Shown in pieces: positions 18 to 50,122 of a DNA stretch of 64,000 bases; the first letter of the stretch is position 1, and each line of letters opens with the position of its first letter. The stretch is taken from positions 1 to 64,000 of the IMG/VR virus record IMGVR_UViG_3300026097_000876. One strand, given 5' to 3'. The notes under the pieces are model-generated. The model saw only the letters and a list, made by a program, of their open reading frames with translations. It made no database searches and was not told the DNA's origin. Both the position numbers and the translations under genes were made by a program.

Positions 18-93
<76 letters not shown>

Positions 94-97
94 AATA

Positions 98-172
98 TGG
101 TGGAGGATGGGAGGGTCGAACTCCCGACTTCGCCGTGCAAGGGCAATGTTTTCCCAACTATACTAATCCCCC
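98..172 (-). tRNA. tRNA-Ala(UGC)
   Basis: Anticodon loop CTTGCAC; G3:U70 pair; encoded CCA. Confidence 0.95.
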
Positions 173-176
173 AAAG

Positions 177-260
177 TGGTGGAGAGTGATGGATTCGAAC
201 CACCGCGCAGTTACGACCTGATTTACAGTCAGGTGCTTTCGACCACTCAGCCAACTCTCC
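177..260 (-). tRNA. tRNA-Tyr(GUA)
   Basis: CCTGA-CTGTAAA-TCAGG; long variable arm; CCA. Confidence 0.95.
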
Positions 261-302
261 GCAAACTTGGGACTGTCTTTAAGGCGCAGTCATTCCTTTA
301 AA

Positions 303-379
303 TGGCTCCGGATGAGGGACTCGAACCCCCGCAGACGCGGTTTTGGAGACCGCCGCTCTTCCAACTGAGCTAATCCGGA
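303..379 (-). tRNA. tRNA-Trp(CCA)
   Basis: GCGGT-CTCCAAA-ACCGC; CCA end. Confidence 0.95.
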
Positions 380-385
380 ATAAAA

Positions 386-462
386 TGGTCGGGATTGCTG
401 GATTCGAACCAACGACATCATGCTCCCAAAGCATGCACTCTACCAGACTGAGCTAAACCCCG
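386..462 (-). tRNA. tRNA-Pro(UGG)
   Basis: CATGC-TTTGGGA-GCATG; CCA end. Confidence 0.95.
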
Positions 463-466
463 ATAT

Positions 467-542
467 TGGAGCCACGGACAGGAGTTGCACCTGCATAGTA
501 AGGATTTGCAGTCCTCTGCCTAACTGTTCGAGCCACCGTGGC
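467..542 (-). tRNA. tRNA-Cys(GCA)
   Basis: Anticodon loop CTGCAAA; U73 discriminator; variant T-loop TGCAACT. Confidence 0.9.
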
Positions 543-549
543 GTAAATT

Positions 550-634
550 TGGCGACAGCGTGTAGACGGTGCCTCGCTCCACCGTTTCGTGTCGACCGGG
601 TTACCCCACAGTCCAGATCACTACACTTAACCCA
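550..634 (-). ncRNA. CCA-terminated structured non-tRNA RNA between tRNA-Asn and tRNA-Cys
   Basis: Stems GTGTAG/CTACAC, ACGGTG/CACCGT, GGG-GTAA-CCC; ends GTCGCCA; no T-loop or anticodon arm. Confidence 0.55.
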
Positions 635-640
635 CGAAAG

Positions 641-716
641 TGGCTGCCCGAGCAGGACTCGAACCTGCGACCAAGAGATTAACAGTCTCCTGCTCTACCA
701 ACTGAGCTATCAGGCA
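641..716 (-). tRNA. tRNA-Asn(GUU)
   Basis: GGAGA-CTGTTAA-TCTCT; CCA end. Confidence 0.95.
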
Positions 717-725
717 ATAAACTAA

Positions 726-758
726 TGAGCAGTTTCATCCACACTTGCTCAGGTGTGG
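726..758 (-). ncRNA. Small H-type pseudoknot motif, copy A
   Basis: S1 CCACAC/GTGTGG, S2 TGAGCA/TGCTCA, loop ending AAAC. Confidence 0.6.
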
Positions 759-827
759 CCGGCCGGCATTTGTTAATCGTTAAAAGCCATTAGGTCTTAC
801 AAGCCTGATGCCTAAACAGAGCAGGAA

Positions 828-855
828 CAAGCAGTTTAAAATCATACTCAGGATC
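828..855 (-). ncRNA. Small H-type pseudoknot motif, copy B
   Basis: S1 GATC/GATT, S2 TGAGTA/TGCTTG, loop ending AAAC. Confidence 0.55.
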
Positions 856-901
856 ATCACAATAGGGGAACTCTAAGAGCGCAAACCCTAATGCCTATAC
901 T

Positions 902-1074
902 AAAACACATTAGAAAGTGTGCTTATTTTTATTGCCCGATAGCCTAGGATTTGGCAGGGTCTGTCTAATGCGTCTACAAGGTAGCTAATCCTCTACGACG
1001 AGCTAGGACACTTACAGTTCACGCTGGGGTTACCACACTGAACTCAACCCTAAGCACACTTTCTAATGTATTTT
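902..1074 (-). ncRNA. ~170-nt structured element closed by a 24-bp stem
   Basis: Inverted repeat AAAATACATTAGAAAGTGTGCTTA / TAAGCACACTTTCTAATGTGTTTT (one G.U); internal AGTTCA/TGAACT stem; no ORF; promoter directly upstream. Confidence 0.55.
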
Positions 1075-1075
1075 C

Positions 1076-1120
1076 TCTAACTGTTATACACAGTATAAAG
1101 TCGTGTTATTGTTTTGTCAA
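1076..1120 (-). promoter_or_regulatory. Sigma70-type early promoter
   Basis: TTGACA-17 nt-TATACT followed by GTGTATAACAGTTAG. Confidence 0.8.
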
Positions 1121-1121
1121 C

Positions 1122-1221
1122 CTTATTATAAAGCACACTACGGAATCGAACCGTTTTTTGTGTTGTAACACCTATCGCCACGACCTAGTAGCTACTATAG
1201 GCTAGTGTGCTTTATAATAAG
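1122..1221 (-). ncRNA. tRNA-like element lacking a canonical anticodon arm and CCA
   Basis: 19-bp closing stem, TA-GCCT...AGGT D-like arm, ACGG-TTCGATT-CCGT T-arm. Confidence 0.55.
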
Positions 1222-1321
1222 TGCTGGGCTATCCCCAGCTTGACCTATCTTGTAACATCCAGGCCGCCGCCCATTTATTTTTTATAGTGCTTGTAGGTTC
1301 GCGTTACCATTTGCACTTGCA

Positions 1322-1355
1322 TTAAAAAACCCCGGAGTATTTCTACTTCGGGGTT
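1322..1355 (-). terminator. Intrinsic terminator (part of putative attenuator)
   Basis: AACCCCGAAGTA-GAAA-TACTCCGGGGTT followed by U run. Confidence 0.8.
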
Positions 1356-1381
1356 CCGTATAATCTGTTAACTTAACTAAA

Positions 1382-1480
1382 CTATACGGAACTCCCACGA
1401 TCATAAATCCAACCACAGAACATCCCCGCCGGATTCGACTGGACCTCTGTTGTGTTCTTATGCATCGTTTTGTTCATCAT
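1382..1480 (-). CDS. Putative 32-aa leaderless leader peptide MMNKTMHKNTTEVQSNPAGMFCGWIYDRGSSV
   Basis: ATG 6 nt after the -10 hexamer; stop codon lies in the 5' arm of an antiterminator hairpin. Confidence 0.55.
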   Translation of the reverse strand: MMNKTMHKNTTEVQSNPAGMFCGWIYDRGSSV

Positions 1481-1486
1481 AGTGTT

Positions 1487-1516
1487 ATATTAACCTCGTT
1501 GACTCTGTTTGTCAAC
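1487..1516 (-). promoter_or_regulatory. Sigma70-type promoter with overlapping GTTGAC-N7-GTCAAC palindrome
   Basis: TTGACA-17 nt-TAATAT; dyad at 1498-1516. Confidence 0.65.
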
Positions 1517-1546
1517 CTCTTTTTACCTTTTTATTTATCTTTTTTC

Positions 1547-1621
1547 TGGAGCGGGTAGCGAGAATCGAACTCGCATCTAAGCGTTGGCAACGCTTTGTAA
1601 TAACCATTATACGATACCCGC
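1547..1621 (-). tRNA. tRNA-Gly(GCC)
   Basis: AAGCG-TTGCCAA-CGCTT; U73; CCA. Confidence 0.95.
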
Positions 1622-1628
1622 AATATTT

Positions 1629-1937
1629 TTAAATACGCTGTCCTGGTTCATAAAACTGAAATGTCTTGCCAGCGGCAAACACACAGGCTATGTCATTATC
1701 TTTATTCACAACTATAAAGCTCCAAGACTGTGTTTCTGTGTTTATCCACAGTGACGAATACAGTAAGCTGTCATTTCCCTCAGCAATGCCTTCACTTAGA
1801 AATATTAGTTCTTCGTTGTACTCTTGTTTTATAAAGTCAAGTACTATCTCTGTTTTAGCGCAATCAACTGGAACGTCATATACTTCTGCTTTTGCTGGTG
1901 AGGCGATGAGCAAAAACATCGCCAATAGGTATTTCAT
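1629..1937 (-). CDS. Small secreted hypothetical protein inside the tRNA cluster
   Basis: GGAGAG RBS before ATG 1937; signal peptide MKYLLAMFLLIASPAKA. Confidence 0.7.
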   Translation of the reverse strand: MKYLLAMFLLIASPAKAEVYDVPVDCAKTEIVLDFIKQEYNEELIFLSEGIAEGNDSLLYSSLWINTETQSWSFIVVNKDNDIACVFAAGKTFQFYEPGQRI

Positions 1938-1950
1938 TTTTCTCTCCAAA

Positions 1951-1978
1951 TGAGTAGTTTTAAAACTTACTCAGGTTT
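1951..1978 (-). ncRNA. Small H-type pseudoknot motif, copy C
   Basis: S1 AAAC/GTTT, S2 TGAGTA/TACTCA; ends 3 nt before the RBS of the next gene. Confidence 0.55.
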
Positions 1979-2200
1979 ACCTTTCCTGGGCACCATTTGC
2001 TCAATTGTTTTACAAGGGGAACAAAACCCTTAAAAATTTTTACACAATGCAAAGAGTGAGTGGTTAACCAATGCATCGACCTAGCTACTTGATAAACTAT
2101 GTCTATCTTTCACTACTTTCAGGCGGTTCAGGCCTTTATCGCCGTCTCCCTAAGGAGCTTGTGTCTAGGTCTTTTTATAGTAGTACCGAATCTACATATT

Positions 2201-2277
2201 TGGTGCCGCTGGAGGGAGTCGAACCCCCAACCTTCTGGACCTAAACCAGACGCCTCTGCCAATTGGGCTACAGCGGC
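2201..2277 (-). tRNA. tRNA-Leu(UAG) with short variable loop
   Basis: TCTGG-TTTAGGT-CCAGA; A73; 77 nt; 5-nt variable region. Confidence 0.85.
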
Positions 2278-2291
2278 AAATATCATATTTA

Positions 2292-2382
2292 TGGCGGAGA
2301 TGGAGGGATTCGAACCCTCGATACGCTATTAACGTATACTCCCTTAGCAGGGGAGCGCGATCGACCACTCTGCCACATCTCC
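2292..2382 (-). tRNA. tRNA-Ser(GCU)
   Basis: CTCCC-CTGCTAA-GGGAG; long variable arm; G73; CCA. Confidence 0.95.
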
Positions 2383-44245: not shown

Positions 44246-46627
44246 CTATCGTTCTATAGCTCTGTTCGCAGCACTAAATCCTGCTCTGTTAACTAATTTA
44301 ATATCGCCTTCGGGATGTGCTAGTACATAGCCTTCGCCGCCTGACTTTCCAGCTGTTTTTGCTTTAACGGTTCCTGGTCTGCTGTCTAAATCAGAAATAA
44401 TACTATCTTTAACTTTCATTATTCCTGATATAACTTCAAACAACGATGTCCATGCACTCATGTTCTGTTTAATATATTCGATAATCTTTTGTTTCTTACC
44501 TTGGCTGATGTCTTTTTTAGTATCTAACCATTTAATAAAGTCGCGCCCAAGATTATCAAGACCTGTGTCTACTTTGCTGTTCATATACTTATAAATGATT
44601 TTAGGAAAGTCTTTCATTTTCATTTGTGTAAGTTTGTTTACATCTAATAAACTATCAATATCAGCAGAGTCTTTTTTAATAATTTGTGCAAGTCTATTAA
44701 TTTCTGAATTATCAACTTGTGCAGGCTCTTCAATAGTCACAGGCGGTACCACTAATAAATCATTGCCTTGGAATATGTCTAAGTCTTTTAATGGCTGTTC
44801 ACTGCCGTCTGCATTTACCATTCTGTGTACAACTACACCGGCGGTTGATCTAGCAATCTTTTTACCTAGATCGCTTTCAACATCTATAGCATATTCAACA
44901 ATATTTGGTTTGAACACAAAGTTTTTATCTTGTACTGGCGGAGTATCATAGTATAACAGATCACCTTTGAAGTATCCTCTATACTCTTCAGGAACTGCCT
45001 TTTCAAACACACCGAATGCTTGTGCCATGTTGTTCGCAAATGCAATACGTTTAGGATCGTCTTTGTTTTTACCACCGCTTCGATTGAGAAGTTCTTGTTT
45101 AAGTGCTTCTGGATCAGTTGTTCTGCCAACTCCGCCTGACTTAATAAACCCTCCTTTGTCTGTGAATACAAATTCGCCATTATCATTTCGTCCAAAAACA
45201 ACCGCTGGTGATCCATCCCATTTTAGTGTTACATTGTTTTTGCCTTCTTGTGCCATATTACGTAAACTTTTTAAAGCTCTAAGTGCTCCTTGTGACCCTT
45301 GTAGATACACTAGGTCTTCTGCATGATCAATGCGAGCACCTTCTGTAAGTTGTATGCTTTCTGTAAATTTATTGTAAAATTTTAGACCGCGTTTTTTATC
45401 TATTGTTTTTATCTTGTCATTTTGAACGCTAGTCCAAATTTTTCTTTTGTCGTCATAGGTCCAAATGTTTTTTTGCTTGTCAACAAAAGAACTTCCTGAT
45501 TTAATATCTTTAGTGTCTTTGCTGTCGCTAGCTTTTCCTACTACTGGATCACTGGTAATGCCAGCTGTCTTTTTAACAGCATCAACTCCTTTTGATATTT
45601 TATCGCCAACTTGGCCCGGGATTGTTTTTGCTCCGCCTGCTTTTTTATATTCTCCTGGCATATCTTTTAATTCACCGCCTGGAGAAAATGTTGATCGGCC
45701 TGCTTTGTATCCTGCATATCCCGATTTTGCCGCGTCTCGCCCTATCATGTACGCCTTGCCAGCTGTTTTAGCGGCAAGTTTTCCTGCTCCTTTGATTGCT
45801 TTCCCTACAAACTCGTCTGTGCGTTTTCTCTCAGCTATTCTAATTCCTGCCCTAAGAGCATTAGTATGTTCGGGTACCAATTTACCCTGCTTTTCCATAT
45901 TCTCTTTCCAAGGAGCAATTAGTTCATCGTAGTTAGGATCACCTTTTAACTTTGCCAACATACTTTCAACAGTATGGGTATCTGGTTCTTTAGCACCTTT
46001 GCCCAATAGTATCTCTGCAATCTCATCCCAGTTGTCTGCAACAACAGCATCACCGTTGTTAGGATCAACTATGCCCTTTGTAGGACTAAACTTGTAACCT
46101 CTGCCTCTTGCGAGACTAGACAGTAGTACAGCTCTGTCTGCTCCAGTATAGTTTTCTGTGCCGCCACGCTTTGCACCTTTTTGTAGTGCAGGATTGTCTG
46201 TCAGCATAAAGTCTGTTTGTACAAAACCGTTTTTAGGATTGCCTTTTATAGGTGTGCGGAAGTGTACTTGATTTCCAGCATCTTTGATCCATCCTGCTTC
46301 GAAGGTCCTGCCCTTATTCATAATCTCTAAATCAGGGATGCCTTGCTTTTGACACCACGCACTAAGTTTTGCTATTATTTCTTCTTTAGGCAATTCCCTA
46401 GTATCTGTGTTTAGATCTAAATCACCAGATGAGTTCTTTTTAAATGTTCCATCTGGATCTGTTTTTGTACCTGTAGTTCCTAGAAATTCTTTTTTAGTAA
46501 ACTTAAATCCGAATGTACTATTAAGCCAATCTATTGTTGGTTGTACATCAGCTGTAGCAATTCTTGATGCAATTAATTCCTTTTCAGGTTCTGTCTTAAA
46601 AACATTGCCGCTTTCTTTAAGAATCAT
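44246..46627 (-). CDS. Pol-beta-like nucleotidyltransferase fused to an ATP-dependent ligase-like (KxDG) domain
   Basis: SSGDLD...VQTDF; TLKWDGSP...FKGDLLY...GEGYVL...KLV. Confidence 0.65.
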   Translation of the reverse strand: MILKESGNVFKTEPEKELIASRIATADVQPTIDWLNSTFGFKFTKKEFLGTTGTKTDPDGTFKKNSSGDLDLNTDTRELPKEEIIAKLSAWCQKQGIPDLEIMNKGRTFEAGWIKDAGNQVHFRTPIKGNPKNGFVQTDFMLTDNPALQKGAKRGGTENYTGADRAVLLSSLARGRGYKFSPTKGIVDPNNGDAVVADNWDEIAEILLGKGAKEPDTHTVESMLAKLKGDPNYDELIAPWKENMEKQGKLVPEHTNALRAGIRIAERKRTDEFVGKAIKGAGKLAAKTAGKAYMIGRDAAKSGYAGYKAGRSTFSPGGELKDMPGEYKKAGGAKTIPGQVGDKISKGVDAVKKTAGITSDPVVGKASDSKDTKDIKSGSSFVDKQKNIWTYDDKRKIWTSVQNDKIKTIDKKRGLKFYNKFTESIQLTEGARIDHAEDLVYLQGSQGALRALKSLRNMAQEGKNNVTLKWDGSPAVVFGRNDNGEFVFTDKGGFIKSGGVGRTTDPEALKQELLNRSGGKNKDDPKRIAFANNMAQAFGVFEKAVPEEYRGYFKGDLLYYDTPPVQDKNFVFKPNIVEYAIDVESDLGKKIARSTAGVVVHRMVNADGSEQPLKDLDIFQGNDLLVVPPVTIEEPAQVDNSEINRLAQIIKKDSADIDSLLDVNKLTQMKMKDFPKIIYKYMNSKVDTGLDNLGRDFIKWLDTKKDISQGKKQKIIEYIKQNMSAWTSLFEVISGIMKVKDSIISDLDSRPGTVKAKTAGKSGGEGYVLAHPEGDIKLVNRAGFSAANRAIER

Positions 46628-46877: not shown

Positions 46878-46946
46878 TTATTACGGCTCCGTAATGTATT
46901 TAGCGTAGTGTTACGGTAAATATGCATATAGATGAAGGAGGGCATC

Positions 46947-47708
46947 ATGTCTATTATTAACCTTACTCTCGCTCAGAGAGGACTGTTGTTTGCTAAACTT
47001 GCTAGTATTGCGTATTTTAATGCTAAAGAAGCAAAAAGTCAAGCAAAAAAATTAGGATTTACTACAGTAGAGTTTTATGATAAAGCAGGGGCACAGGCTT
47101 ATCGCTTTATGAACAAAGTCGATCTTGTTATTATTTGTCGCGGTACGGAGCCAACAGAATGGAATGACATCAAAGCAGACCTAGACGCTGTACCTGTAAT
47201 GGCAGAGACTGTTAGTCGTGTACACAGAGGTTTCAAAGCAGAAGTTGACGAGCTATGGCCAATGGTTATGGAAGATGTTCAAAGAGAAGGTGACGAACGA
47301 GATGTTTGGTTCTGTGGGCACAGTCTAGGAGCAGCAATGACTACTATTATGGCAAGTCGTTGTTTCCACGATCCAGACTTACCAAATCCTGTGGAAGTAC
47401 ACACCTATGGTTCGCCTCGTGTAGGATGGCCAGGATATGTTAAGGGGTTAGGCATGACACATCATCGTTGGGTAAACAACAATGATATCGTAACCAAAGT
47501 TCCAATGGCTATCATGGGTTATCGTCATCACGGTATCGAACATTACATTGATTCAGAAGGTGATGTTGATCAAGAAAAGGGCTTTGCTCGCTTCTGGGAT
47601 GGCTTCCAAGGGTTCTGGAGAGGACTTGTTTCAGGTAAGGTTGATCAAATCGACGATCACAATATGAGTAACTATATTGCTCACTTGGAGCGTTTTGCTA
47701 ACAAGTAA
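46947..47708 (+). CDS. Class 3 lipase (alpha/beta hydrolase)
   Basis: CRGTE, VHRGF, GHSLGAA, YGSPRVG, DIVTKVP, DDHNM. Confidence 0.9.
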   Translation: MSIINLTLAQRGLLFAKLASIAYFNAKEAKSQAKKLGFTTVEFYDKAGAQAYRFMNKVDLVIICRGTEPTEWNDIKADLDAVPVMAETVSRVHRGFKAEVDELWPMVMEDVQREGDERDVWFCGHSLGAAMTTIMASRCFHDPDLPNPVEVHTYGSPRVGWPGYVKGLGMTHHRWVNNNDIVTKVPMAIMGYRHHGIEHYIDSEGDVDQEKGFARFWDGFQGFWRGLVSGKVDQIDDHNMSNYIAHLERFANK

Positions 47709-47883
47709 CGAATGACCGTTGCCACTGACAGTATGCCTGCCCAACACAGATATACTGTCAGTCCACTTCCGCCTGTGAGTTCTAAGAGCTCAGTTCTACT
47801 AAAAAACGATCCTGCTACACCTAGGCTTACCAGCATAAAAGCAAATGCCACAGCCCAACAAATTAATAAGTTCAATAACAGTT

Positions 47884-48258
47884 TCAATCCAGTATCCCCT
47901 TAATAACAAAACTCGGACGCTCGTCGTATTCCTCTCTGAAGTATGGAGGTATCTTGATGTCACTGGAGAAATACCAATGACTGCCATTTGCAGGATCTCC
48001 CACACTCTTGTTGCTTATTCTGCACACACAGGGCAAATGAGTCCAACCCATTAGAGGCATCATATACACACGATGATTGCCACTGTCTAATCTTATGGTT
48101 CGTTCAATAATGTTTACCCAGATAATGATAGGATCCTTCACACCATTGCGATCCACGTCTCTACCCAGCTCAACCATGTCCAGTGCATCTACAGGTGTAG
48201 GAGGCATCGCGGCCCATTGTAATAGTTTTTTGATTGATATCTGCTCAATTACATCCAT
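47884..48258 (-). CDS. ParB/Srx N-terminal-like domain protein
   Basis: NGVKDPII...LDSGNHRV. Confidence 0.6.
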   Translation of the reverse strand: MDVIEQISIKKLLQWAAMPPTPVDALDMVELGRDVDRNGVKDPIIIWVNIIERTIRLDSGNHRVYMMPLMGWTHLPCVCRISNKSVGDPANGSHWYFSSDIKIPPYFREEYDERPSFVIKGILD

Positions 48259-48259
48259 G

Positions 48260-48973
48260 TCAGTCCCAGTATTTGTCTCCGTCTATGTTGTCCCAGTATT
48301 CTTCGTTGTTGCGATTCCAAAAGTTCTTTATCAAATACCATGCCATGCCAAAGTATCCCATCTTCTGAAAACGTCTGCTGTCCTGTCCGAAGTGATGATT
48401 AATTAACTTGAACTTTTCTGGCTTGTACTGCTTGCTTAGGAAGAAATCTTCGGAAGTAACATAACGGCAAGGAAAGCCTCCCAGTTCTTCAAAGCGGTCT
48501 CTGCGTGTGAGCATGAACGCACCCACCGCAAACGGCACTGAATACTGCATGAAGCTGTTGACGATGTTGAACAGGGTAAATCCTATTCTTGCTCGAATGT
48601 CTCCGTCATAGCATTTGATATACATGCCCAGCAAATCCAAGTCGTGCGACTCAAAGATGCACACACTGTCTGCTATTTCTGTGTGGGTAAAGAAACGCAC
48701 GTCAGCATCTATGAACAGGATGTATGGTGTTGTCGCATGCTTTGCACCATTGTTCTTGGCTTCTGAAACAGGTCCGCCTTCAACCACTTTGATGTTGAGT
48801 TTGTGCTGTTTCTGTTTGCGTTCGATAACCTTGCGAGTGTCATCGTCACTGGCATCTGCTATAATGATTTGAGTGTCGGCTACCTGCTTTGCTAGATCGT
48901 CAAGTAGATGTCCAATATAGTCCTCCTCGTTCTTAGAGGGTATGACTATGGTTATCTTGTTCTTCAATGTCAT
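48260..48973 (-). CDS. Glycosyltransferase family 2
   Basis: IVIPSKNEE, IIIADASDD, YILFIDAD, SEDF. Confidence 0.9.
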   Translation of the reverse strand: MTLKNKITIVIPSKNEEDYIGHLLDDLAKQVADTQIIIADASDDDTRKVIERKQKQHKLNIKVVEGGPVSEAKNNGAKHATTPYILFIDADVRFFTHTEIADSVCIFESHDLDLLGMYIKCYDGDIRARIGFTLFNIVNSFMQYSVPFAVGAFMLTRRDRFEELGGFPCRYVTSEDFFLSKQYKPEKFKLINHHFGQDSRRFQKMGYFGMAWYLIKNFWNRNNEEYWDNIDGDKYWD

Positions 48974-49730
48974 CCGGTTTTCCATCGTTGTTGTATTCGT
49001 AAAACAGTATTTCCCAGCGTCCGTCGGTGTGTTCTAACAGAGCTGAACAGCTCTCGACCCAGTCGCCATCGTTCATGTATTCTATGCCGTTTATTTCTTT
49101 TATCTCTGCTGTGTGAATATGTCCACAGATAGCACCATCGTAGCCTTTCTTATAACAATAGTCTGCGACGTGCTCTTCGAATGAGTTGATGTAGTTCACA
49201 GCACCCTTAGTTTTTGATTTGAGAAACTTGCTTAGGCTCCAGTAAGGCATGCCAATCCAGCCGCGAACTGTGTTGAAGTGTGTGTTAAACCATATCAGTG
49301 TGTTGTATGCCGCATCGCCCAAATGCATTATCCACTTCTTGTTTGGCATCATCAAGCCATCAAACATGTCGCCATGAACAACCAAATACTTCTTGCCGTT
49401 CACCGCACGATAATCATAACGGTTTAGTATTCGAATGCGTCCTATGTCGATGTCGTATGACAGGAACTTGCGGATAACTTCATCGTGATTGCCCAGTATG
49501 TAATACACTTTGGTATCACGCTTGGCTGCTGTGAATATGCGTCTAATAACATTGGCGTGGCTTTGTGGGAAATACCAGCGTTTCCTCAGTCGCCAGCCGT
49601 CTATGATATCGCCAACTAGGAATAAGTTATCACAGGTGTTTTCTTTTAGAAAGGCACAAAGAGCATCGGCTTGGCAACCACGAGTGCCTAAATGTATGTC
49701 TGAGATGAAGATGCTCTTATAATGAGCCAT
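48933..49730 (-). CDS. PlcP/LpxH2-type metallophosphoesterase (putative phospholipase C)
   Basis: FISDIHLG, LVGDIIDGWRL..RWYFPQSH, GNHDE, HGDMFD, CGHIH, NDGDWVESCSAL. Confidence 0.8.
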   Translation of the reverse strand: MAHYKSIFISDIHLGTRGCQADALCAFLKENTCDNLFLVGDIIDGWRLRKRWYFPQSHANVIRRIFTAAKRDTKVYYILGNHDEVIRKFLSYDIDIGRIRILNRYDYRAVNGKKYLVVHGDMFDGLMMPNKKWIMHLGDAAYNTLIWFNTHFNTVRGWIGMPYWSLSKFLKSKTKGAVNYINSFEEHVADYCYKKGYDGAICGHIHTAEIKEINGIEYMNDGDWVESCSALLEHTDGRWEILFYEYNNDGKPDDIEEQDNHSHTL

Positions 49731-50122
49731 AGCGTGTGTCCTTCTGCTTACGTATTTATAAGCAGAAAGACTACACCTTTGTTACAATGATTAGAAACCG
49801 TCGGCTAATGTCCACTTGGGATTAAAAGACTTGCCTTTCGCTTTACGGTCTAAGATTTTGGCTAGTTCTAGCTCACGCAGTTTGCGTATCATCTTGCCGT
49901 CGTGGGAAAGAGAAGCCGAATACATTTCTTTTAATAGTTTTGATTGTTTCATGTGCTTTCTCCTTTCTTACTACATATATAGTATATATGCAAATTGTAC
50001 GACTTTTAAATGGTTAGTTTATTCTTTGTATAAATACCGAGGCAAGATACGTTCTCGACCTGACAACTTGGTAAGACAAGTCGCGCTCGCGATAAAAAGC
50101 ATCATTACGATAGGAGACTAAA

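Follow-up and report, generated by a model that had tools for sequence, protein, structure and literature searches.

Why would a giant T4-like marine phage carry a metallophosphoesterase gene that overlaps a glycosyltransferase gene, with a lipase gene close by? We addressed this question in a 64,000-nucleotide stretch (the window), positions 1 to 64,000 of IMG/VR record IMGVR_UViG_3300026097_000876. An earlier note had described the three genes and read them as a lipid-remodelling cassette, in which a PlcP-like phospholipase C mines host membrane phosphate for genome synthesis and the glycosyltransferase backfills the membrane with glycolipid, possibly also changing receptors. The observation is correct, as all three genes are where the note placed them, but the interpretation is only partly supported by our analysis. 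Our best reading, to which we assign a probability of roughly 0.6, is that the minus-strand pair at 49730-48260 is a phage-borne version of the bacterial PlcP-glycosyltransferase lipid-renovation operon.

The esterase gene (48933-49730, minus strand) encodes 265 residues and matches Pfam Metallophos at 1.6e-15. It contains GDIIDGWRL at residues 40-48 and WYFPQSH at residues 52-58, and its metal-binding motifs (D11-x-H13, G40-D41, G80-N81-H82, H119 and G203-H204-x-H206) are invariant or nearly invariant across 34-36 phage and bacterial sequences, which completes the motif set of a calcineurin-like metallophosphoesterase. The metallophosphoesterase core carries a helical, Trp-rich insertion (residues about 121-195) and a disordered acidic tail (residues 246-265) that overlaps the next gene. 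The glycosyltransferase gene (minus strand) runs from 48985 to 48260 when read from its first ATG (241 aa), while the gene call of the public collection starts at the second ATG, 48973 (237 aa); the esterase stop overlaps its start by 41 nt, or by 53 nt from the first ATG. It matches Pfam Glycos_transf_2 (PF00535) at 1.5e-17. Each of the three proteins has hundreds to thousands of homologues at E<1e-5, so that none of this is chance.

The lipase gene lies on the plus strand in an ORF at 46932-47708. Its likelier start is the ATG at 46947, which is preceded by AAGGAGG and is the start given in the note. It matches Lipase_3 at 7.3e-17 and the esterase/lipase family phrog_21992 at 1.2e-22, and the triad of a class 3 lipase, an alpha/beta hydrolase, is present by motif position, with GHSLG at residues 124-128, D180 (in NNNDIVTKVP) and H238 (in DDHNM) in 253-aa numbering; its substrate was not examined. 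The lipase stop lies 552 nt from the glycosyltransferase stop, and the two transcription units converge. The lipase is conserved beside the module only in the DUF6267-type phage lineage (viral loci L004 and L091-L094), and in 2 of 80 and 4 of 80 viral loci overall. Including it in a cassette, as the note did, is therefore not justified in general: it is a neighbour, not shown to be part of the module. The minus-strand operon has a third gene (47884-48258), whose ATG is 1 nt after the glycosyltransferase stop. It encodes a stand-alone ParB N-terminal-domain-like protein of 124 aa with a DSGNHR motif, gave no Pfam, NCBIfam or PHROG hit, and has viral ParB_N proteins as its nearest clusters in a protein atlas (score 0.96, 190 shared features). 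It is absent from the other cassettes examined and is probably unrelated to lipid chemistry.

To determine whether the esterase is a PlcP or an LpxH (UDP-2,3-diacylglucosamine pyrophosphatase), we compared scores, motifs, phylogeny and gene neighbourhoods. LpxH is the usual database label: homologues are named 'UDP-2,3-diacylglucosamine hydrolase / LpxH', and viral 'lpxH' is listed under LPS biosynthesis (PMC10653327; PMC9611531). The predicted fold is indeed LpxH-like, with a helical cap inserted after the HGD motif, and the top 25 PDB hits of a Foldseek search with the AF2 model are all LpxH, but at 18-21% identity; GenBank records of the phages Mosig and S-SRM01 were left out of the structure predictions, and a PDB sequence search with the esterase found nothing at E<=0.01. 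On the curated LpxH models NF003743 and TIGR01854 the protein scores 48.1 and 34.8 bits against cut-offs of 134 and 190 (46.1 bits when the genome was searched). Of five beta/gamma-proteobacterial control genomes, four hold a true LpxH (204-287 bits) and all five hold a separate paralogue at 37-60 bits, which is the one related to the phage protein. A profile built from the phage proteins gives bacterial plcP 308-420 bits and LpxH 22-41 bits. The protein has the variants GNHD, GDIIDGW, W.FPQ.H and CGHIH, in contrast to GNRD, GDLFE.W and HGHTH in LpxH, and the clade-specific motifs W.[FW]PQ.H, GNHD, CGHIH and GDWVES are present.

Grouping with LpxH was one of the outcomes that the note had set out in advance as fatal to its reading. 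In our tree LpxH instead splits off with 100% SH-aLRT support, and the window protein sits in a phage clade (99) that groups with Hyphomonas/Hellea plcP-like genes and Pelagibacter phage Mosig (95). Bacterial relatives at 46-53% identity (Pelagibacteraceae, Mesorhizobium, R. palustris, Caulobacter and Phenylobacterium) are each followed by a GT4 gene, which is the plcP-agt operon of PMC4796936. The references are orthologues defined by this operon, and no experimentally validated PlcP sequence was included; however, the identity range matches the 46-47% reported between validated PlcPs (PMC8528852). Known bacterial PlcPs are S. meliloti SMc00171, Phaeobacter sp. MED193_17359, SAR11 HTCC7211 PB7211_983 and P. 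aeruginosa PA3219. Membership in the PlcP clade is thus strong, although phospholipase C activity releasing diacylglycerol was not assayed.

The glycosyltransferase is a GT-A protein of the GT2 family. D40, D89-A-D91 and E175-D176, corresponding to the nucleotide-sugar-binding Asp, the DxD metal motif and the catalytic-base region of an inverting GT2, are invariant in 42 sequences, as are R200-R201. The AF2 model is confident (pLDDT 95), but sequence and structure searches of the PDB gave only generic GT-A matches. The C-terminal 40 residues, after a conserved RRF motif, are rich in Trp and Tyr (11 aromatics). The protein is not Agt, the GT4 bifunctional MGDG/GADG synthase of Agrobacterium, SAR11 and Pseudomonas (Agt1/Agt2), which belongs to the GT-B class with Glyco_transf_4 and Glycos_transf_1 domains and shows no sequence relationship to it. 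It is also not Pgt, the GT21 processive glycosyltransferase of Mesorhizobium loti that is found downstream of plcP in some bacteria (the 'type 3' context in PMC4796936). Although it shares the GT-A fold with Pgt and passes the Pfam Glyco_transf_21 (PF13506) cut-off (30.3 against 21.7 bits), BLASTP finds no significant match, hhalign gives 62% probability and 19% identity to a Mesorhizobium GT21 protein that itself scores 190 bits on PF13506, and the window protein has 237 residues without membrane-spanning segments against the about 400 aa of Pgt. Its best curated model is TIGR04283, at 67 bits against a cut-off of 182. Beyond the GT-A core we detected no kinship with any characterized glycolipid synthase.

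What links this enzyme to PlcP is its position. In 64 of 67 viral loci with this GT2, a PlcP-like gene lies immediately upstream on the same strand, often overlapping, and the pairing persists down to 34-45% GT2 identity and in at least six phage backgrounds. Of 73 viral PlcP-like loci, 39 have an Agt-like GT4 next and 21 have the GT2 next, and the partner type switches at least 14 times on the PlcP tree. The viral locus L131 is from a bona fide T4-like phage (gp23, gp19, UvsW) whose PlcP-like protein is 79% identical to that of the window and is followed by an Agt-like GT4. The 262 kb of the phage genome that we examined contain no other GT2 and no GT4 (no PF00534 match). The family is largely virus-borne: none of 80 bacterial plcP loci has this GT2 within 5 kb, it was not found beside plcP in five genomes holding the nearest bacterial PlcP, and its nearest cellular relatives (29-34% identity, 11 of 401 Pseudomonadota) sit beside DedA-family membrane proteins, not beside plcP. 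A plcP gene would be expected to have a gene for a phosphorus-free-lipid synthase (agt, pgt or btaAB) next to it; here a glycosyltransferase follows with a 41-nt overlap, but its acceptor is not known, which leaves this criterion undecided. Prediction of an esterase-GT2 complex gave no answer.

We next examined whether the module is linked to phosphate stress. In relatives it is. pstS lies directly upstream of the module in the viral loci L004 and L127 and divergently in Mosig, and on the same strand within about 2 kb in 12 of 80 viral loci. A Pho-box-like repeat with two or fewer mismatches to CTGTAAY-N4-CTGTAAY occurs in 20 of 121 upstream regions against 0.2-0.4 expected, a 50- to 90-fold enrichment, and 19 of those 20 lie at -39..-51; SAR11 plcP upstream regions carry a similar AT-rich box. 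The window has only a degenerate copy (TTGTAAC-AAAG-GTGTAGT; 49770-49787, minus strand; three mismatches) at -57..-40 of the plcP-like start, and the chance of such a site starting in a given 20-nt window is about 0.005. A good Pho-like site near 219313 of the genome lies antisense inside a gene and was dismissed as chance. No pstS, phoH or UDP-glucose dehydrogenase gene was found in the 262 kb, which CheckV rates 73% complete, so that absence from the phage is not shown. A search for sequencing runs holding the locus listed two DNA runs and no RNA-seq run, and phosphate-responsive expression is not shown for this copy; whether it is under Pho control is not decided by these observations.

The upstream region of this copy looks instead like that of a late gene. 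The T4-type late-promoter motif TATAAATA (49753-49760, minus strand) lies 30 nt upstream of the plcP-like ATG and 9 nt downstream of the Pho-like repeat. The genome, which encodes gp23, has 23 copies of this motif; 15 are intergenic although only about 6% of the genome is intergenic, and 12 lie 13-47 nt upstream of a same-strand start. The motif is contained in the loop and 5´ arm of a stable hairpin (49739-49775, minus strand) whose 3´ arm contains the Shine-Dalgarno sequence (AGAAGGA) of the plcP-like gene. The RNA folds at -21.6 kcal/mol (z = -5.5; 0 of 200 shuffles as stable), but the hairpin is not conserved in the upstream regions of the nearest relatives. In T4 gene e (lysozyme), a late promoter lies inside a hairpin that sequesters the Shine-Dalgarno sequence, so that only late transcripts can be translated. 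The resemblance is inferred from sequence only.

Taken together, we propose the following model. The PlcP-like enzyme would be a Mn-dependent LpxH-fold phosphoesterase with a helical, lipid-facing cap that cleaves host glycerophospholipids into diacylglycerol and a phospho-head group, from which host phosphatases can then release phosphate. The translationally coupled GT2 would be a peripheral-membrane GT-A enzyme that glycosylates the diacylglycerol from a UDP-sugar, so that the membrane is refilled with a phosphorus-free glycolipid, and it would be a virus-borne non-orthologous replacement for Agt. In this view the module is wired to the host Pho regulon in relatives, whereas in this phage it appears to be translated mainly from late transcripts, since the hairpin would mask the ribosome-binding site in longer transcripts. 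Our analysis supports the family membership of the esterase, its functional coupling to the glycosyltransferase and the phosphate link in relatives; the activity of the esterase is inferred, the diacylglycerol acceptor of the GT2 is inferred only from position, and no enzyme, lipid or expression data exist. The likely benefit, phosphorus for a genome larger than 260 kb (about 330 kb in the longer assembly) while the cell is kept intact, is likewise inference, as are the mining of phosphate for genome synthesis and the change of receptors suggested in the note.

The alternative that survives best, though we consider it unlikely, is that the esterase is a true PlcP whereas the GT2 acts on another membrane or soluble acceptor, such as polyprenyl phosphate, a lipid A or LPS intermediate, a head-group product, a protein or modified DNA, and that the conserved pairing reflects a different two-step pathway or simple co-regulation. 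The lack of relationship to Agt, the only remote relationship to Pgt, the weak TIGR04283 match and the cellular relatives beside DedA-family lipid or undecaprenyl-phosphate transporters are consistent with this alternative, and in one T4-like lineage the pair sits next to a TET-associated DNA glycosyltransferase. However, TAGT was detected in none of the 157 further viral loci scanned, adjacency to PlcP in viruses is near-obligate, and the GT2 occupies exactly the Agt slot with repeated swaps. The Trp/Tyr-rich C-terminus suits an interfacial lipid acceptor, and some cassettes add a UDP-glucose-dehydrogenase-like gene directly after the GT2, which fits the glucuronosyl-diacylglycerol known from SAR11 (PMC4796936).

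Still less likely is a late lysis or membrane-dismantling function, in which the PlcP-like enzyme, possibly together with the lipase, weakens or digests the host envelope at the end of infection. The late promoter and RBS-masking hairpin imply late translation, a cytoplasmic class-3 lipase lies next door in this lineage, and pstS and phoH are lacking in the part of the genome examined. A lysis role, however, explains neither the near-obligate downstream glycosyltransferase nor the pstS and Pho-box links in relatives, and most PlcP-carrying phages have no adjacent lipase. Late genes in T4-like phages are expressed while DNA is still being made, so late expression is compatible with phosphorus scavenging. 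The weakest alternative is a phage LpxH paired with an LPS core or O-antigen transferase in an LPS-biosynthesis or seroconversion module that alters the host surface, for example to exclude other phages, which current annotation, the LpxH-like fold, a GT2 hit to the GtrB-like phrog_841 over its first 90 residues and the reading of pelagimyophage glycosyltransferases and UDP-glucose dehydrogenase as LPS genes (PMC7029224) favor, but which is very improbable given the LpxH scores, paralogue pattern, tree and motifs, the plcP-agt operons of the alphaproteobacterial relatives, the phosphate-stress associations and the absence from the GT2 of the C-terminal transmembrane helices of GtrB-type enzymes.

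The PlcP family and its glycosyltransferase operon are known from bacteria; what differs here is that the module is encoded by a T4-like jumbo phage, that the partner is a GT2 rather than Agt, Pgt or BtaAB, and that this copy has a late-promoter and hairpin arrangement. We found no description of a phage-encoded PlcP in a literature search that excluded most subscription journals, a result that does not mean that none is published. The gene is common, with at least 593 relatives confirmed in IMG/VR, and because it is currently counted as an LPS-biosynthesis gene ('lpxH') in viral gene surveys, re-labelling it changes how those surveys are read. The GT2 partner would be a new, compact glycolipid synthase family. 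A bolder possibility, which we regard as tentative, is that the GT2 founds a virus-borne class of diacylglycerol glycosyltransferase that has displaced the bacterial Agt behind phage plcP genes many times; T4-like marine phages would then run a complete phospholipid-to-glycolipid conversion on their own schedule (here, late in infection) whatever the phosphate status of the host, which would free lipid phosphorus for DNA and give the infected cell a lipid surface that the uninfected host does not make. Phosphorus limits phage production in much of the surface ocean, and the known phage answers are uptake genes such as pstS and phoA, which, with phoH, are carried by cyanophages and pelagiphages. 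The PlcP-like gene is likewise a host-derived gene of marine T4-like phages, but it would act on an internal phosphorus store, the membrane lipid, rather than on uptake. A phage-encoded PlcP module would add a second route: stripping phosphorus from the host's own membrane while keeping the membrane intact.

The window is the first 64 kb of a 261.8-kb IMG/VR virus record rated 73% complete, and a longer assembly of 331.6 kb carries the identical GT2 protein. The phage encodes a gp23-type major capsid protein, which identifies it as a T4-like jumbo myovirus. An array of 10 tRNA genes (Thr, Ala, Tyr, Trp, Pro, Cys, Asn, Gly, Leu, Ser) lies at the very start of the window (18–2382, minus strand). 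ORF listing and family scans confirmed the three genes described in the earlier note, so its observation holds. A 265-aa calcineurin-like metallophosphoesterase is located at 49730–48933 on the minus strand and is followed by a GT2 glycosyltransferase at 48973–48260 (or 48985–48260), which overlaps the esterase stop by 41 or 53 nt. A class-3 lipase is located on the plus strand at 46932/46947–47708, and the ATG at 46947 has the AAGGAGG ribosome-binding site. The operon contains a third gene, a stand-alone 124-aa ParB N-terminal-domain-like protein with a DSGNHR motif (48258–47884, minus strand), which starts 1 nt after the GT2 stop and is translationally coupled to it. Its nearest protein-atlas clusters are viral ParB_N proteins. 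The lipase converges on this operon and is a separate transcription unit. A possible 68-aa ORF with two hydrophobic segments and a TTG start (47681–47887, minus strand) lies between the ParB-like gene and the lipase stop and overlaps the lipase end on the other strand; it was found only in this genome and may not be a gene. The public run holding 84% of the sampled words of the locus (46900–49800) is labelled 'soil metagenome', and a second, weak holder is labelled 'estuary metagenome'. All relatives found are from aquatic-type phage contigs, so the soil label looks odd.

The esterase is PlcP-like and is not LpxH. The curated LpxH models give 48.1 and 34.8 bits against cut-offs of 134 and 190. 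In four of five beta- and gamma-proteobacterial genomes, the same model finds a true LpxH at 204–287 bits, while all five contain a separate paralogue at 37–60 bits, which is the gene related to the phage protein. A profile built from the phage proteins scores 308–420 bits on the bacterial relatives and only 22–41 bits on LpxH. Grouping with LpxH had been named in the earlier note as a result that would refute its interpretation, and a maximum-likelihood tree gave the opposite outcome: LpxH is separated with 100% SH-aLRT on a very long branch, and the window protein is placed in a phage-only clade (99). That clade groups with Hyphomonas/Hellea genes and Pelagibacter phage Mosig (95), all inside the bacterial clade. 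The sequence alignment revealed fixed differences between the two families. The PlcP clade, including the window protein, has GDI[IV]DGW, W.[FW]PQ.H, GNHD, CGHIH and GDWVES, whereas LpxH has GDLFE.W, GNRD and HGHTH. The GDIIDGWRL..W.FPQSH pattern pointed out in the earlier note is therefore real and diagnostic of this clade.

The bacterial relatives share 46–53% identity with the window protein. In Pelagibacteraceae, Mesorhizobium, Rhodopseudomonas palustris, Caulobacter and Phenylobacterium, they are each followed directly by a GT4 gene, which is the plcP-agt arrangement validated genetically in Phaeobacter and SAR11 (PMC4796936) and in P. aeruginosa (PMC8528852). The latter study reports 46–47% identity between validated PlcPs. 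As no experimentally tested PlcP sequence was included in the comparison, family membership rests on operon-defined orthologues. The AlphaFold model (pLDDT 79) has the metallophosphoesterase core with two long helices inserted at residues about 121–195. Its 25 best PDB matches are all LpxH, at 18–21% identity, and the predicted fold thus includes the lipid-binding cap architecture. A sequence search of the PDB returned no match.

The GT2 has an intact GT-A active site, in which D40, D89xD91, E175-D176 and R200-R201 are invariant in 42 sequences, and its predicted structure is very confident (pLDDT 95). The 40 C-terminal residues contain 11 aromatics after a basic RRF motif, which would suit binding at a membrane interface. 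However, homology does not name a function. PDB matches are generic GT-A enzymes such as TarS, PcManGT and WrtF. The best curated family is TIGR04283, at 67 bits against a cut-off of 182, and a Mesorhizobium Pgt-like GT21 matches only remotely. Isolated phages lack the GT2, and none of 80 bacterial plcP loci has it within 5 kb. Cellular relatives are rare (11 of 401 Pseudomonadota) and distant (29–34% identity). In the Pseudomonadota genomes examined (L121–L126), they form a conserved pair with a DedA-family membrane protein of about 425 aa, which in four of the six lies beside the ribosomal protein L25 gene; the pathway is uncharacterised as far as we could see.

In contrast, the genomic context is informative. 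Both genes are common in IMG/VR, with at least 593 and at least 529 confirmed relatives of the esterase and the GT2, respectively. Of 67 viral loci anchored on the GT2 with enough flank, 64 have a PlcP-like gene immediately upstream on the same strand, often overlapping. The pairing holds down to 34–45% GT2 identity and occurs in at least six genomic backgrounds: the DUF6267/lipase lineage to which the window belongs; T4-like contigs with MazG upstream; a contig with ribonucleotide reductase, ThyX and a halogenase; a contig with pstS directly upstream; and two more divergent contigs, L107 and L109, the latter with the gene order reversed. In a T4-like lineage (contigs L007–L009, 9460–10866; L128, 7466–8884), the pair is preceded by MazG and peptide deformylase and followed by a TET-associated glycosyltransferase (PF20691, a DNA base glycosyltransferase family), which was not detected in 157 further viral loci. 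One related phage contig (L091, 85–1596 and 6095–7711; likewise L093) carries two PlcP-like/GT2 pairs 4.5 kb apart, and the second esterase groups with the lineage of another viral contig, L095, not with its neighbour. Related phage contigs (L092, 412–3098; L093, 10418–10894; L107, 7952–9533) also carry a ubiquitin-like gene, a 654-aa ice-binding-domain protein, and inteins, one of them inside a thymidylate synthase.

Anchoring on PlcP instead gives 73 viral loci with room downstream. The next gene is an Agt-like GT4 in 39, this GT2 in 21, and neither in 13. The contig L131 shows the Agt form in an unquestionable T4-like phage, in which gp23, scaffold and gp19 precede a PlcP-like gene 79% identical to that of the window, followed by an Agt-like GT4 (37–42% identical to Pelagibacter and Mesorhizobium Agt) and then UvsW. 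On a quick PlcP tree of 148 sequences, the partner type changes at least 14 times. The 261.8-kb record contains no GT4 and no second GT2. The GT2 is therefore a positional and probably functional substitute for Agt. This is the main argument that it glycosylates diacylglycerol, which is an inference. In the window's own lineage, several cassettes insert a UDP-glucose-dehydrogenase-like gene of about 250 aa right after the GT2 (contigs L004, 9509–10270, and L091, 7755–8507), with the central domain and part of the NAD domain but no C-terminal UDP-binding domain. This recalls the glucuronosyl-diacylglycerol made by SAR11 Agt. In L004 a PRPP synthetase follows this gene, and in the window the ParB-like gene takes its place.

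To examine the link to phosphate, the regions upstream of the PlcP-like genes were compared. pstS lies directly upstream in the viral contigs L004 and L127 and divergently in phage Mosig, and it is on the same strand within about 2 kb in 12 of 80 viral loci. Upstream of the gene in L004, L091 and L092, we noticed CTGTAAT-CAAA-CTGTAAC, which has the 7+4+7 architecture of a Pho box. When tested on other loci, the pattern CTGTAAY-N4-CTGTAAY with 2 or fewer mismatches occurs in 20 of 121 non-identical upstream regions, compared with 0.2–0.4 in shuffles and random windows, and 19 of the 20 sites lie at -39 to -51. SAR11 plcP genes carry a similar AT-rich repeat (TTTTAAC-AAAT-TTGTAAC), and higher-GC bacteria carry CGTCAT/TGTCAT versions. 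The intergenic region between the divergent pstS and PlcP-like genes of phage Mosig (5851–6000) contains several TTAACA repeats at roughly 11-bp spacing, which may be the SAR11-type Pho boxes shared by both genes. The window has TTGTAAC-AAAG-GTGTAGT at -57 to -40 (49787–49770), with 3 mismatches and a chance of roughly 0.005–0.01 for that position. It sits 9 nt upstream of TATAAATA.

TATAAATA is the T4 late-promoter consensus and behaves as a real signal in this genome. Of its 23 copies, 15 are intergenic although only about 6% of the sequence is intergenic, and 12 lie 13–47 nt upstream of a same-strand start codon. The copy 30 nt upstream of the PlcP-like ATG lies in the loop and 5´ arm of a strong hairpin (49739–49775, minus strand; -21.6 kcal/mol, z = -5.5), the 3´ arm of which contains the Shine-Dalgarno sequence. 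Transcripts from upstream would mask the ribosome-binding site, whereas transcripts started at the late promoter would not, which is the arrangement of T4 gene e; this gating was not tested here. The hairpin is not conserved in the nearest relatives, and no pstS or phoH was found in the 261.8-kb record. For this phage the evidence therefore favours late-phase deployment, although RNA data were lacking, and Pho control is shown statistically only for relatives.

The lipase has the class-3 motifs, and no signal peptide is visible by eye. It is conserved, convergent and adjacent only in the DUF6267-type lineage, at 61–66% identity in the viral contigs L004 and L005, and is present in just 2 and 4 of the two sets of 80 viral loci. 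Among isolates, only Cylindrospermopsis phages and one unassigned 'Bacteriophage sp.' record have a distant copy. It could act on diacylglycerol or on phospholipid acyl chains, but nothing ties it functionally to the pair. In the same region, a 793-aa protein (44246–46627, minus strand) has a C-terminal half matching DUF6267 (2e-36) and a long, Lys/Gly-rich N-terminal half with no match, whereas relatives in cyanophages and in contigs L004 and L091 are only about 380 aa.

The interpretation offered in the earlier note, that the phage mines host membrane phosphate and backfills with glycolipid, is partly supported. The esterase satisfies the protein-sequence criteria for PlcP that were examined, the metal-binding motifs and the grouping with plcP genes apart from LpxH, and we are highly confident that it is a PlcP-family enzyme. 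The GT2 fails membership of both Agt and Pgt. The gene pairing and family placement come directly from the analysis, while the conversion of phospholipid to glycolipid by the pair is inferred, with a probability of about 0.6. That its purpose is phosphorus supply for phage DNA is less certain still and was not tested. No description of phage-encoded PlcP was found in the literature that could be searched, and the announcement of phage Mosig does not mention the gene. Viral surveys list 'lpxH' under LPS biosynthesis, and the pelagimyophage study read phage glycosyltransferases and UDP-glucose dehydrogenase as LPS genes. In the reading favoured here, the module would work like the bacterial PlcP-Agt/Pgt lipid-renovation operon, a known bacterial pathway carried by phages in two forms, one of which uses a partner enzyme not described before.
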